In this document: piece after piece, positions 6,023 through 19,676 of the stretch
Position numbering within the stretch: position 1 is the first letter of the stretch
How the letters are laid out: every line of letters starts with the position of its first letter
NCBI GenBank assembly: GCA_033442325.1
Contig: JAWQFM010000013.1
Location: forward strand, 89,464-109,139
Reading direction: 5' to 3'
Origin: Salpingoeca rosetta
Lineage: Eukaryota; Protista; Choanoflagellata
Length of the DNA: 19,676 nucleotides
The notes under the pieces: generated by a model
Databases searched by the model: none
What the model saw: only the letters and a program-made list of their open reading frames with translations
What the model was told of the DNA's origin: nothing
Translations under genes and position numbers: made by a program

Positions 6023-9000
6023 GCGTGATGCGGCTGACTGGTGAAATCATGGACTCACTGTCCAAAAACCAGCGAAACTTTGCCCCACCTACCATCGGCA
6101 TTGGTGAGCGAACCGAAATGACTCGGATGCGTCGCAGTGTGTGTGTGTGTGTGTGTGCGTGCGTGTGCGTGCGTGTGTGTTGTGTGTGTTGTGTGCGTGC
6201 GTGTGTGTGTGCATGTGTGTGTGTGTGCTTGTGTGTGTATGTGTGGTATTTCTGCGTTTTGTTCATCCACGCGCGGCTTCGTTCTCACATCAGCTCTGAC
6301 CACTCCCCATTGCAGCAACATACGGCATTGTGCATGCGGGGGACGATCTTCTCGCTGTACGTGTGACCACCTGCGCATGCATGCGCTCACATGCTGCAGC
6401 ACCAGTTGCGCGTGTACCACTTCACTTCACACAACGCACACATTCACTCCTCACTGCACCCGATTGTATCCATGTGTTTTGGTGCGTGTGCAGCGCGACA
6501 GCAGCCGCTTGCCCAAGCTGGAGGTGCCGTACGACATCACACCGCCGCAGGGATCGAGGAAGGCCGCGCTCGACCCAAACCACAATGTGTTTCTGCTGGT
6601 GGATGACGGCACACGTGACAAGTTTGGCAAGGAGATCAAGTTTCGTGCTGCTGTTGAGAGTGTACGTGCCCAGCTCGCAGTGTCTGCATTTGGAAGAAGG
6701 GCCGTGCGTTTCTTCAATTTCCGCCGTGTTCATACACGTTCATGCAGGTGTCGTGGCCAACGCTCACGACACACATACACACACACACACACGCGCGCGC
6801 GCACACTTACTCACACACTCGCGCACACTCACACACACACTCGCGCACACTCACACACACACACTCGCGCACACTCACACACTCACTCACACACACACAC
6901 GCACAGGCCACACGCAAGAGGTTCGATGCACCCGTAATCACCGTTGTCATTCAAGGCGGTCCTGGCACCCTCAACACGGCACTGGAAGCGAGTACGTATT
7001 ATGTCAAATGTGCGCTGCATTTATTGCTGAATGATGATAGCCATTCTGTGACGCACAAGCACTCATCGATCAAGTTTCCGCTGCATTTCACATGCGTGTA
7101 TGTGTGTGTGTGTGTCTGTCTGTCTGTCCATGTGTGTTTCATTCATCATCCAGTCCGTGAGAACACGCCCATCGTGGTTGTCGACAAGTCTGGCCTCGCT
7201 GCAGACGTGCTCGCTTATGCTTACCATTTTTGCCACAGTTCATCGTACGTTTGGTTGTTGAGTCATACATGCATGCATGCAAGTATGGTGTGTGATACCT
7301 GTGTGTATGTGTGTGTGTGTCTGACCTTCCTCTCAAACGCCACAACGCTGACATCGTCTGCCAAACCACTCACAAGTCACACGCCACACTGTCATCAGGT
7401 CCAAATACACATCACACACCGCAGAGGGGCTGCGTCGCCTCGTCACGGAATCGTTTAACGTCAAAGACCCAAATCCCGCTGAGAAGTACAGGCAGTACTT
7501 CTACGACGCGCTCGAATGCGTCGACAACCCGCACCTGGTGGGACTCGGCCATGCACTGATGGGCGGGGAGGGTTTGGGGACACGTGAAATGCTGTGCGCA
7601 ATGCTGTGCGCAATGCGATTGCCGTGTATGTTTGTGCGTGCGTGTGCGTGTGCGTGTGCGTGCGTGTGTGTGCGTACGTGTGCGTGTGCGTGTGCGTGCG
7701 TGTGTGTGTGTGTGTGTGTGTGTGTGTGTGTGTGTGTGTGTGTGTGTGCACTGGGTAATTTCATGCTGTGCTGCTCTATGTTCACTTTACGCACGCGACA
7801 AACCGCCGAAGCTCACTGTCGCGTTGGTTGAATGTTCAGGTGCACGTGTTCAACCTTCAGGACAGCGGTCCCGATGAATTTGAAAACTGCATCCTCAATG
7901 TACGTTCGTGGTCATGGGCCTGCACTGTTGGAAAATGGTCGAGGTGCTTCTCGCGACACTGCTTCTGCTGGCATACACATCATGTCCTACACATTTACCC
8001 ATGCCTTCATATCCGCACATGCACACACACATACTCACACAATTACTTACACACACACATGAACACACACGCGCGCGCACGTACGTACACGCAATTTCAT
8101 ACATGCGCATACACACACCTGCCCTCACAAACATGCACGCATATGCACTCATTGCTCGACAGGCCATCTTCAGCAACGAGAGCAACTTGCAGAATCAGCT
8201 GAAACAAGGTGTGCTTCATAAAGTGGCAGCACTACCTGCATAGTGCTCCTTTTCCTCGTTGTCACACTGTGCGCCAATCCCACTCGTCCTTCTTTGCTTC
8301 TCACTTTGTGTCTCTGTGCTGCCTTCACCTCAACAGCAATGTTTTTCGATCGCCCGGACATTGCAAACAAGGCGCTCACCGCCCGTCGCAAGGAGGCCTT
8401 TGTAGGTTTGCTGGCATGGCAGCCCTGATTAGCCCCTCTTGGGCTCCCCAATGTGCACAGTGGTGTCTTCCTTGCCTGCGAACGCGCGCGCGCACACACA
8501 CACACACACACACACACACACACACACACACACACACACACACACACACACACACACACACACACACACACACACACACACACACACACACACATACGCA
8601 CACACATACACACACTCACGCGCATGCACACACGCACATGTGCCATCAGGACATCAACGCGAGCCTGCAGGAGGCCCTCGTGTACGACAAGCCGCGCTTC
8701 GTCGAGCTGTATCTCACACACGGCGCAAAGATTTCAGAGGTAAGTTGCCTGGCACGTACGCTTCCCCTTGCGCGTTGTGAGTTTCATATGTGTGTCTGGC
8801 ATGAGCCGGTGACCCACGTTTGTGCAAGTTCACAGTCTCACATACGAACACTCACATACACCACAAACATGCACCTTGCAAAGCTCAAGCCACGTGGCAT
8901 GCCCGAAAAGGCGCCCGGCCCGCTCGCGAGTCTTCCAGAATATGCAATCGCCGTTGAAGACTTGTACAAGGTGGGCACCGACCATTCCACACAGGCGCTG

Positions 9001-12000
9001 TTGTTCGCCTATGCTCTCAAATCCATCATACACGTACACAGACACACACACATATGCACACACATGCACACACAGACACACGGCCGCATTCTTTGCTCAT
9101 TTCCACCTTATGCATCCAACCTTCCCCTGCCCCAACCTTCCACTTGTGCGTCTCCCACTCTTCTGCAGCGCGAGGCCAACAAACCCCACAACCACATCAA
9201 ACGCCTCGTGTCGTTCTCCAACACGGACGAGCTCGGCCAATCACGTCGCTTCCGTGGCATCAGCATGCGCTTTGGCGGCGACAGCAACAACGGCAAATCT
9301 GACGGCGGGCGCCTCTTCAATGTCATACGCATGGGTCGAATTCTCTCGCGGCTTATCCACAAGAACGTGTCGTGAGTACTTGCGATCTGTAGCTGTGTGT
9401 GTGTGTGTGTGTGTGTGTGTGTGTGTGTGTGTGTGTGCGTGCGTGCACGCGTGTGTGTGTGTGCGTGCTTGATTGTGCTTGATTGCGTATGATTTGTGTG
9501 TGTGTGTGTGTGTGTATGTGATTCGGGTGCTTATATGTGCGTTGTGTGCGTGCGTGAATGTCGCGTGTTCGTTTCATGCAATCGTACCCTCATTGGCAAA
9601 AGCTGTGGTCGAAGCAGCAACTCTCTGCACACCATCCCAACAACATTGCCTTACCGTCTTCGTGTATTCATTTCCTCATCCCGTCTTTTGCCCCCCCCCC
9701 CAACTTTCTTCCTTCCCCTCACAGGATCGTTGACGAGAAGCGCCTGACCTCCGACAACTCCACGCTCAGCAAGAAAGAGCAAGAGACTTCCGCCCTCCAT
9801 CTCATCTTCGTGAGTTCACAATATCGACCTACGTTGTGAATTTGTGGATGGTTCGTGTCACCCATCTCTTGGTGCCCTGTTGTCATTTCACGTTGATGGC
9901 CAGTCTGATCAGCCAATACAAACACGATCCAATTATGTACATACACCCTACTTCAATGCCAGCCGGTTTCCAGCAGCTTTGTTCATCCGCTCTCAACACC
10001 CCATCACATTGTATTGCCTTGTTTCGTCAGCTGTGGGCCGTCTGCCTGGACAAGTTTGAGCTTGCGCGTATGTTCTGGCTGCGCGGGGACCAGTCTATTC
10101 TCAATGCGCTGATTGCCAGCCGCCTGCTGTCTGCCCTCAGCCGCCACACTGCCCTCTCCGGCGCGCACTTGCAGGAGGAACGCGAGAAAATGATCATGGA
10201 TTCAAAGTGAGAACGCAACAGCTTCATGCTTGTGTGTTCTTGTGCTCTTGTGTGTGTGTGTGTGTGTGTATGCTTTGTTGTGTTTTGTGGTTTGTTGTGT
10301 TTTGTGGTTTGTTGTTTAGTGGTTTGTGTTTTGTGTTTTGTTGTGTTTTTGTGTTTTGTGTTTTTTTTTTTTTTGTGGGTGCGCGCGCGCGCGGAAACAA
10401 GTGTAGCAGAGCGTGTGTTGCAATCATCCGAGGTTTCGCCATATCACCACGTTTTCCTCCGTCCTCTTCTCGCTTCGCTCGCTTCCGTCTTTTAAGGTCC
10501 TTTGAGGCACTGGCGATTGGTGTTGTTGATGAATGCTACAACGATGACACCCTGCTCACCCAGAAGATGCTGCATCTGCGTCATCCGCTCTTCCGCTGGG
10601 ACGCCGTCAGGGTGTGTGTGTGTGTGTGTGTGTGTGTGTGTGTGTGTGTGTGTGTGTGTGTGTGTGTGTGTGTGTGTGTGTGTGTGTGTGTGTGTGTGTG
10701 TGTCGCGACTGACTTTCGAGTTTCAAGACCGCATGCTACTTCCTGATAATATTGCATGTGCACAACCTGGCAGCCATGTGCACATGCTCTCAAGCAAACA
10801 CAAACAGAAAACACGCATACTCACGTGCTACATGTCACACACACACACGCGCGCACGCGCGCGCAAACGCACACACATGGCATTGCGCACAGATGGCGTA
10901 CGAGACGAATGCGCTTCGCTTCCTGTCGCACACAGCGACACAGTCTGTCGTCAGCAATGACTGGAATGGCGGTCTCAAGCTCATCATGCCCTTCTGGCAG
11001 GTGCGGTGCGACCACGCGTCTATGACTTGCACAGCAGCCCACTCTGCGTGTGCGTGTGTGTGTGTGTGTGCCTGTGCCTGTGCCTGTGTGTGTGTGTGTG
11101 TGTGTCTGTCTGTGTGTGTGTCTGTCTGTGTGTCTGTGTTCAGGTGCGTCGTGAATGAATGCTCGATTGCCATGTTATTGTAGCTCACACTGTAACGGCA
11201 AATTCATACGTGTCCAGGTTGTCCTCGCGTACTTTGTGCCGTTCCTGGTACTGCCCTTCTACGACCTCACATCGGAGGTGCGGATGTTGCACTAGTTGGT
11301 GCGCGGTATCCTCATGCATTCTTCAGCTTGCATCTCGGCATGCACACATATACGTGCACACACGGGCACGCAAACAGGCACACAAACGCACCCAGACACA
11401 TGATTCGCTCACACCTTTTTCGTTCGCGCCAACTACACGCATGCGAGCCCCCTTAACTTTCAAATTGCCACAATCGCATTGATTGGTTGCAGGCAAAACA
11501 AGACCAAGACGACGAGCGAGAGCGCCAGACCGGCAGTTACTTCAAAGGCCGTCAGGACGAAGGGGAAGTATTATCCCCCAAGTCATCTCCATCGGCATTT
11601 TGGTCCTTTCTCTCTGTCGTTGGCAGATTCTACAGCTCACCCTACATTCGGTATGCGCCCTCGGAATGTGTGCGTGAATGTGTGTGTGTGTGTGAGTGTG
11701 TGTGCGTGAATGTGTGTGTGTGTGTGTGTGTGTGCGTGTGTGTATGTGTGTGTGTGTGTATCACTGACATGTTTCGTTATGTTCCTCATGACGCCGTATC
11801 GCTCCTCCTCGACCAAACACACACGCAGCGACAAACAGATTTGTGTCGGACGTGCTGTCCCCATCTCGTGCTGTGCATTTTCTTTCCTCTAATACGTCTC
11901 GACGGCCTGACCGACGGCCTCTCAGCTAGTGGAACTCCTCTTCATCATCTTGTTTGGCAGTCTCTCTGTTGAAGAAGGCCGGCAGGTGCGTCCCTGTGTG

Positions 12001-19612: not shown

Positions 19613-19619
19613 GTGGCTT

Positions 19620-19676
19620 TGTGTGTGTTTGTGCGTGTGTGTGTGTGTGTGTGTGTGTGTGTGTGTGTGTGTGTGT
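19620..19676 (+). repeat. Intronic (GT)n microsatellite running off the window
   Basis: Seen directly. Confidence 0.92.

Follow-up and report, generated by a model that had tools for sequence, protein, structure and literature searches.

A probable head-to-tail array of three TRPM2-type channel-enzyme genes, with srTRPM2 as its third member, on one contig of Salpingoeca rosetta

Layout of the array and exon structure of its genes

The DNA analysed here, referred to as the window, is a stretch of 19,676 nucleotides from the + strand of one contig of the choanoflagellate Salpingoeca rosetta (contig JAWQFM010000013.1 of assembly GCA_033442325.1, abbreviated to C13; the window is C13:89464-109139), and it carries two same-strand TRPM2-like genes with short exons and with introns rich in (TG)n/(CA)n microsatellites. 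Gene 1 occupies positions 6023-15789 of the window, while the first conserved exon of gene 2 begins at 16823. The locus is in all likelihood a head-to-tail array of three TRPM2-type channel-enzymes ('chanzymes') on a single contig, in which genes 1 and 2 lie in the window and the characterised S. rosetta channel, srTRPM2, comes third, gene 2 probably being a working gene, gene 1 a copy held by purifying selection and perhaps marred by assembly faults, and the copies having undergone gene conversion among themselves. The domain plan predicted for these proteins comprises a SLOG-type MHR1/2 that would bind ADP-ribose (ADPR), MHR3/4, a six-helix channel with a divalent-cation site in S2/S3, the TRP helix, rib and pole helices, and a NUDT9-H domain that would act as an ADP-ribose pyrophosphatase.

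The genome searched comprises 55.4 Mb in 68 contigs, and 80 kb of C13 were examined in order to follow the array past the end of the window. A DNA search of the genome located three NUDT9-H exons on C13, all on the + strand, at 104362, 116449/116520 and 131353/131359, the downstream copies being 77% identical in protein to that of gene 1, and a profile search placed first-exon matches to PF18139 at 106636 and 122124 of the same contig. The third gene spans C13:121643-132189, downstream of the window. Gene 3 is the characterised srTRPM2 (accession XP_004993318, PMC6461439; UniProt F2UB89) and matches PDB 8sr7 in every stretch tested, because its motifs, its stretches identical to 8sr7, its length of 1494 aa and its residue numbering all agree. 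The four srTRPM2 NUDT9-H motifs taken from the 8sr7 alignment are all present in gene 3 (4/4) and in no other copy, and PDB searches revealed that its open frames are identical to 8sr7 at residues 60-107, 536-604 and 1205-1218. With the 8sr7 residue numbers and F268, R275 and E1114 as checkpoints (10.1101/2023.03.16.533055), gene 3 was rebuilt from residue 61 to the stop in 30 exons, giving 60 + 1434 = 1494 aa, which is the PDB chain length, and L605, E1114 and W1216 fell at their published numbers (numbering: 10.1101/2023.03.16.533055). Genes 1 and 2 are uncharacterised paralogs of srTRPM2.

An earlier note, made from the letters of the window, had proposed two same-strand TRPM2-like genes as part of a diverged tandem array in a unicellular holozoan, and both the pair and the array were recovered, the latter with three members. 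Its suggestion that neither gene is identical to the characterised channel also holds, gene 1 being 56% and gene 2 73% identical to srTRPM2, and the divergence that it saw between the two proteins amounts to 56% identity. The equal exon sizes to which it pointed recur in the present models, with 81 nt at 6023-6103 and 17715-17795, 85 nt at 6907-6991 and 18592-18676, and 91 nt at 7154-7244 and 18891-18981. Past the window, gene 2 proved to have a channel domain and a NUDT9-H exon, and the third copy was found downstream. Its spacing of ~650 nt between the two genes applies only if the ATG at 16443 is used, as the distance from the gene 1 stop to the first conserved gene 2 exon is ~1.0 kb.

The exon peptides of gene 3 were mapped to genes 1 and 2 by three-frame local alignment, and splice sites were chosen by dynamic programming around hand-set exon cores, with a few set by hand; the procedure was validated on gene 3 against the PDB numbering. 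A 1073-aa open frame on contig C6 was also tried as a long query and dropped, having only two 5-mers in common with the array genes. Both window genes follow the exon template of gene 3 in colinear order, their exons agreeing with it in length and being flanked by AG/GT. Gene 1 was resolved into 25 + strand exons between 6023 and 15786, all bounded by AG/GT and followed by a TAG stop at 15787-15789, and 24 of the 25 are open, including those for S3-S6 and the TRP helix, which carry the same pore motif as srTRPM2. PF18139 matches were obtained on its later SLOG exons. The last open reading frame of gene 1 (14899-15786) aligned with residues 1216-1493 of PDB 8sr7 at E = 5e-147 and ~80% identity, thus closely but not identically, and has a Pfam NUDIX match. 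Approximate junctions in gene 1 are the acceptor of E5 and the donor of E10, and 14040-14569 may contain an intron. The features are as follows (window positions; exon names follow the srTRPM2 template).

Gene 1 and its upstream flank
5722..5821, no strand: assembly gap of 100 N upstream of gene 1 (N run)
5822..6022, +: 3' part of intron 2, which aligns with intron 2 of gene 2 as far as the gap (blastn 5824-6245, 69.6% over 425 nt; 140/218 columns identical)
6023..6103, +: E3, 81 nt, MHR1/2; AG/GT; aligns to srTRPM2 residues 188-213
6316..6356, +: E4, 41 nt (template alignment)
6494..6661, +: E5, 168 nt, with F268 and R275 equivalents; acceptor approximate (6494, 6518 or 6524, all phase 0)
6907..6991, +: E6, 85 nt (template alignment)
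7154..7244, +: E7, 91 nt (template alignment)
7399..7537, +: E8, 139 nt (template alignment)
7840..7899, +: E9a, 60 nt; E9 is split by an intron (7900-8162) absent from genes 2 and 3
8163..8208, +: E9b, 46 nt; 60 + 46 = 106 nt, the E9 size in genes 2 and 3
8337..8401, +: E10, 65 nt; donor hand-set
8650..8739, +: E11, 90 nt (template alignment)
8884..8970, +: E12, 87 nt (template alignment)
9169..9371, +: E13+E14 fused, 203 nt (93 + 110 in srTRPM2)
9913..10206, +: E14b+E15 fused, 294 nt
10497..10605, +: E16, 109 nt (template alignment)
10893..11000, +: E17, 108 nt (template alignment)
11218..11277, +: E18, 60 nt (template alignment)
11493..11650, +: E19, 158 nt, pre-S1 linker
11839..11985, +: E20, 147 nt, S1-S2, with two +1 shifts (three-frame view and nucleotide alignment to gene 2)
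12321..12449, +: E21, 129 nt, S3 with the WNRLD cation-site motif
12571..12733, +: E22, 163 nt, S4-S5
13014..13189, +: E23, 176 nt, pore helix and filter FQIYGELF
13451..13526, +: E24, 76 nt, S6
13749..13817, +: E25, 69 nt, TRP helix
14040..14569, +: E26+E27 in one open frame, 530 nt, with post-TRP region, Cys-rich linker, rib and pole helices and E1114 equivalent; an internal intron is possible
14929..15789, +: last exon, NUDT9-H with intact Nudix box, TAG at 15787-15789 (PDB 8sr7, Pfam NUDIX)

The intron content of gene 1 differs from that of srTRPM2 by one extra intron, which splits E9, and by two absent ones. At the E14b/E15 junction (~10025-10030), six nucleotides ('cgtcag'), similar to the 3' terminus of the intron that the paralogs have there, are translated through as Arg-Gln. 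A Cys-rich stretch followed by a Ser-rich spacer was observed at ~14126-14310, between the post-TRP region and the rib helix and in frame with both flanks; it could be either a retained linker or an optional intron.

Gene 2 was resolved into 26 readable exons, all of which are open. The ATG at 16443 is present, its role as start codon being unverified. The first SLOG exon, E2, matched Pfam LSDAT_euk at E = 1.9e-23, and each of the channel exons E20-E25 has an open frame, with 75% identity to srTRPM2 across residues 761-1035. The NUDT9-H exon lies beyond the window at C13:116449-117357, with the stop at C13:117357. Exon lengths equal to the template are 238, 81, 85, 91, 106, 105, 176, 118, 108, 60, 140, 145, 129, 163, 176, 76 and 69 nt, with some other junctions differing from it by 3n. 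E13-E14b are fused into a single exon of 453 nt (C13:110926-111378, or 21463-21915 on the window scale) versus 93 + 110 + 94 nt in srTRPM2, which adds ~52 residues to the MHR3/4 linker, and E26-E27 are fused as well. Gene 2 is probably a working chanzyme, with all of its readable exons intact.

Gene 2 within the window
16443..16445, +: candidate ATG, unverified start
16823..16878, +: Ea, first exon conserved with srTRPM2 (residues 61-78); in-frame Met at 16853 common to genes 2 and 3; 5' limit uncertain
16992..17073, +: Eb, 82 nt
17173..17410, +: E2, 238 nt, first SLOG/MHR1 exon (Pfam LSDAT_euk)
17715..17795, +: E3, 81 nt
18020..18069, +: E4, 50 nt
18260..18412, +: E5, 153 nt, with F268 and R275 equivalents
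18592..18676, +: E6, 85 nt
18891..18981, +: E7, 91 nt
19180..19312, +: E8, 133 nt
19507..19612, +: E9, 106 nt, last gene 2 exon inside the window

Intron 6 of gene 2 (18677-18890) can be aligned with that of gene 3 (C13:123441-123641) at 76.6% over 406 nt including the flanking exons, which most introns cannot. When the E7 frame is extended upstream into this intron, genes 2 and 3 encode the same 12 residues, which may point to an alternative acceptor or to a conversion tract. At the other end of the window, positions 1-5721 contain long + strand open frames (e.g., 480-1517, and one from 4048 to the gap) with 64% G+C and no Pfam match, reaching the N gap; the gene there differs from gene 1 and adjoins it across the gap.

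Protein comparison and sequence exchange between the copies

Substantial variation in identity was observed between the modules of the three predicted proteins, as listed below, with a ratio of non-synonymous to synonymous divergence (dN/dS) of ~0.3 among the array genes.

Protein identity by module
Overall: genes 1 vs 3, 56%; genes 2 vs 3, 73%; genes 1 vs 2, 56%
MHR1/2: genes 1 vs 3, 55%; genes 2 vs 3, 82%; genes 1 vs 2, 59%
MHR3/4: genes 1 vs 3, 49%; genes 2 vs 3, 67%; genes 1 vs 2, 44%
Pre-S1 and transmembrane domain: genes 1 vs 3, 52%; genes 2 vs 3, 75%; genes 1 vs 2, 54%
TRP-rib-pole: genes 1 vs 3, 40%; genes 2 vs 3, 54%; genes 1 vs 2, 35%
NUDT9-H: genes 1 vs 3, 77%; genes 2 vs 3, 80%; genes 1 vs 2, 81%

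This degree of divergence also bears on whether the array could be an assembly artefact, produced from collapsed or duplicated haplotypes or from a mis-joined scaffold. N gaps do occur within the array and next to it, and introns rich in microsatellites are hard to assemble. However, the copies differ by 27-44% in protein, far past allelic variation, their introns are mostly unalignable, their intron content and insertions differ, and near-consecutive annotated locus tags fit three genes, so that such an artefact is hardly credible.

The residues that could be placed are kept throughout. In srTRPM2 numbering, both genes 1 and 2 retain F268 and R275 of the ADPR site in MHR1/2, E1114 of the MgMHR site, W1264 and F1372 of the adenine sandwich in NUDT9-H, and the Nudix REFMEE box (R1385, E1386, E1389 and E1390) together with the catalytic base D1460. 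The end of S2 reads EELRQ in genes 2 and 3 and EEGRQ in gene 1, S3 carries WNRLD in all three genes, and the pore motif FQIYGELF is common to them. The S2 E..Q and S3 WNxLD residues are what we take, from TRPM2 and TRPM4, to be the divalent-cation site of the transmembrane domain. The earlier note had envisaged copies that differ in ligand; this part of it found no support, as there is no sign in the protein comparison of a different ligand for genes 1 or 2, because all placed ADPR-site, cation-site, catalytic and pore residues are kept.

A related explanation is that the copies have diverged in function, by taking another nucleotide ligand or cation or by having become obligate partners of srTRPM2 in heterotetramers. 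In its favour, identity between copies drops to 35-54% in TRP-rib-pole and to 44-67% in MHR3/4, gene 2 has its 52-aa insertion in the MHR3/4 linker, and gene 1 has the Cys-rich linker after the TRP helix; moreover, the pole helix of the TRPM family, a coiled coil, takes part in assembly. Against these differences stands the identity of the placed ADPR-contacting, cation-site and catalytic residues and of the pore motif in the three genes, and we consider functional divergence of this kind unlikely.

By analogy with srTRPM2, ADPR would bind to both MHR1/2 and NUDT9-H, a non-selective cation pore would open once MHR1/2 has bound ADPR and the S1-S4 site Ca2+ or Mg2+, and slow hydrolysis by NUDT9-H would lower the local ADPR and limit the response. 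The current gated by ADPR plus Ca2+/Mg2+ and the hydrolysis of ADPR have been shown only for gene 3 (PMC6461439; 10.1101/2023.03.16.533055).

Comparison of the DNA revealed long identical tracts between copies. Genes 2 and 3 have the first of the tracts listed below in common, which runs across the E2 donor into the intron, and further identical runs at 17529-17810, covering the end of intron 2 and E3, as well as a 200-nt identical run in NUDT9-H. Gene 1 has the second tract in common with srTRPM2, and more identical sequence occurs between ~15397 and 15464; genes 1 and 3 are only ~70% identical over the exon that bears it.

Identical tracts in the window
17243..17415, +: 173-nt identical tract, gene 2 vs srTRPM2, across the E2 donor into the intron
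15263..15362, +: 100-nt identical tract, gene 1 vs srTRPM2

Tract lengths of 173, 200 and 100 nt were reached in 0/2000 shuffles of the differences. The NUDT9-H exon is a mosaic in which pairs of copies fall to 42-68% identity between identical blocks, and synonymous divergence (dS) is 0.30-0.69 in this exon vs 0.49-2.7 elsewhere. Long identical tracts of this kind show gene conversion, which, as ectopic exchange, probably holds the enzyme exon alike in the three genes and does the same for the 5' SLOG exons in genes 2 and 3. Divergence among the array genes is found in the linkers, the pole helix and MHR3/4.

In a tree of five copies, which also included dispersed S. rosetta copies on contigs C4 and C5, genes 2 and 3 were sisters with 99/99 support, while gene 1 stood on a long branch, its distance to genes 2 and 3 being similar to that of the C4 and C5 copies. 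A clade holding the array together was not rejected in this tree (p-AU 0.2), and the tree supports only the pair of genes 2 and 3. The six-copy tree was without resolution because the added C36 copy lacks most exons. In a tree of the NUDT9-H domain, the three array copies cluster with 82/88 support, as conversion would produce, and the free NUDT9s form a sister group apart from the choanoflagellate TRPM-fused NUDT9-H domains. It is conceivable, though we would put it forward only tentatively and expect it to be wrong, that the array evolves in concert module by module, conversion holding the ADPR-hydrolase exon and, in genes 2 and 3, the ligand-binding SLOG exons almost unchanged between neighbours while the MHR3/4 linker, the post-TRP linker and the pole helix are free to diverge, with the copies having the same ligand chemistry and different gating kinetics, localisation or partners, including heterotetramers with srTRPM2. 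If true, the published properties of 'srTRPM2' would describe just one subunit among those of the native channels.

The state of gene 1

As assembled, gene 1 is defective in two places. The assembly contains no equivalents of Ea, Eb and the 238-nt E2, a gap of 100 N (5722-5821) standing upstream, and neither PF18139 nor local alignment found an E2-like exon for it. Its exon E20 has 147 nt vs 145 nt in genes 2 and 3 and encodes the homologous peptide in three successive frames (11840-11860, 11862-11924 and 11926-11985), the extra bases lying near 11861, inside a C4 run, and near 11925; each frame taken singly has stops. Rescue of this exon by other acceptors, other donors or exon skipping was attempted, and none keeps the frame. 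A silent pseudogene, which the earlier note had considered for one of the two genes, is a possibility for gene 1, which as assembled has the two +1 frameshifts and lacks its 5' exons.

The 5' end of gene 1 looks unassembled rather than deleted, because the homology of its intron 2 with that of gene 2 reaches the edge of the gap. For its defects in general, we lean towards a fault of the assembly as the somewhat probable cause: both shifts are clustered in one exon and the 24 other exons are clean with canonical splice sites, one of the two shifts lies inside a C4 run, and the same S. rosetta reference is without 83 residues of another TRP gene that cDNA contains (10.64898/2026.06.15.732245). 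That the lesions are real has a chance that falls a little short of even. At ~0.29, the dN/dS of gene 1 equals that of the intact pair, genes 2 and 3, which speaks for an assembly fault as well; gene 1 has diverged for a long time and has done so under purifying selection.

Real lesions would make gene 1 a young pseudogene, truly 5'-truncated or frameshifted, recently disabled and patched by conversion with genes 2 and 3 as donors. The two +1 shifts in exon E20, which leave no frame free of stops, speak for this, as do the absence of the first SLOG exon and the gene start from the assembly and the conversion tracts from gene 3 in the last exon. However, the other 24 exons (~4.0 kb of coding sequence) are without stops or shifts and have AG/GT at all splice sites, the chance of a random second lesion in the same 147-nt exon is only ~3%, and the dN/dS given above is that of intact genes. 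The intron 2 homology up to the gap edge likewise makes the 5' loss look like missing assembly, and the reference is known for local defects. We hold a recent loss of gene 1 to be somewhat less probable than not, and a copy under purifying selection with assembly faults is the reading adopted in the account of the array given at the outset.

Several points weigh against that account and are gathered here. The second frameshift of gene 1 lies outside any homopolymer, the two +1 shifts do not compensate each other, and no S1-S6 can be obtained from gene 1 as assembled. E10 of gene 2 falls in a run of 1062 N directly after the window (C13:109140-110201) and is unreadable. The models are limited at their 5' ends, as gene 1 begins at E3 on account of the gap and gene 2 begins at Ea with an uncertain 5' limit. 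Models and gene status alike are drawn from genomic sequence alone, the function ascribed to genes 1 and 2 is a prediction from conserved residues, and their assignment, with gene 3, to the annotated tags PTSG_05446, PTSG_05447 and PTSG_05449 is inferred only from the near-consecutive numbers.

Relatives of the array and its meaning for choanoflagellate TRPM channels

The closest known system is srTRPM2 itself (PDB 8sr7), with which genes 1 and 2 have the contig, strand, exon plan, domain order, key residues and pore motif in common. In comparison with it, gene 1 has the split E9, the fused E13+E14, E14b+E15 and E26-E27, the Cys-rich linker and, as assembled, a broken S1-S2 exon and no 5' exons, whereas gene 2 has the fused E13-E14b and E26-E27 and the 52-aa insertion in the MHR3/4 linker. 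The nvTRPM2 of Nematostella vectensis (PDB 6co7), which belongs to the animal lineage, has a Nudix box of the active type and was matched by the gene 1 NUDT9-H at E = 3e-69, yet is far more distant than srTRPM2. Human and zebrafish TRPM2 (PDB 6mix, 6puo and 6drj) have the same architecture and the same logic of ADPR/Ca2+ gating, with the gene 1 NUDT9-H matching at E = 5e-33 for human and 2.5e-12 for zebrafish. The vertebrate NUDT9-H is catalytically dead, E1386 and D1460 having been replaced (PMC6461439), whereas genes 1 and 2 keep both residues. NUDT9, the mitochondrial ADP-ribose pyrophosphatase (PDB 1q33), is a full homolog of the last exon of gene 1 (E = 1e-69), but is free there and fused to a channel here.

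Within S. rosetta, the dispersed TRPM copies on C4, C5 and C36 have an SLOG first exon and a NUDT9-H exon as the array genes do, but are not in tandem, and copies on C6, C15 and C25 have SLOG only. The C4 copy (C4:1121452-1131651) looks complete, while the C5 copy (C5:1848999-1859353) has a degenerate Nudix box. The C36 copy (C36:582666-589688, - strand) has SLOG and a 78% identical NUDT9-H, and its channel exons were matched only for E18, E22, E24 and E25, weakly. A word search with the NUDT9-H exon of gene 1, run under a length filter that shuts out full-length TRPMs, found free NUDT9s and one metagenome fragment (71% identical) but nothing else, S. rosetta transcript fragments included.

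According to a 2026 preprint, S. rosetta has eight TRPMs, NUDIX being present in five, and TRPMs have expanded in a lineage-specific manner (10.64898/2026.06.15.732245). Its table assigns Ion_trans, SLOG, NUDIX and six transmembrane segments to the TRPMs PTSG_05446, PTSG_05447 and PTSG_05449 (10.64898/2026.06.15.732245). The main text of the same preprint (10.64898/2026.06.15.732245) names PTSG_01970 as an N-terminally truncated TRPM, while the table has PTSG_09170, without Pfam domains, and no 01970, which is probably a typing slip. The spacer between genes 2 and 3 (C13:117358-121640) measures 4.3 kb and has open frames of up to ~217 aa; PTSG_05448 may sit there. The word 'tandem' is absent from the main text of the 2026 preprint (10.64898/2026.06.15.732245), 'paralog' and 'genome' are absent from the text of the structure preprint (10.1101/2023.03.16.533055), 'paralog' is absent from the 2019 eLife paper (PMC6461439), the MBE paper uses 'tandem' for vertebrate genes only, and the PTSG tags of the array receive no mention in the searchable paper texts. 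The text of a ciliome preprint reports 'a homolog of TRPM2' in choanoflagellate cilia and does not specify the paralog. The genes are thus already annotated and counted, while their adjacency to srTRPM2, the conversion and the state of gene 1 are not described in the searchable literature.

With the expansion of the family already on record, the gain is incremental. The srTRPM2 channel serves as the structural and mechanistic model of ancestral TRPM chanzymes and, until now, has been handled as one representative gene; here it is adjoined by two paralogs that keep the ligand and catalytic residues and exchange sequence. In gene 1, a probable local defect of the reference assembly is flagged. 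The array matters for how native currents and knock-outs of S. rosetta are interpreted, since redundancy, and perhaps heteromers, must be taken into account, and for phylogenies that are built on one 'choanoflagellate TRPM2'. Furthermore, the paralogs are natural variants for probing which parts of a chanzyme tolerate change.

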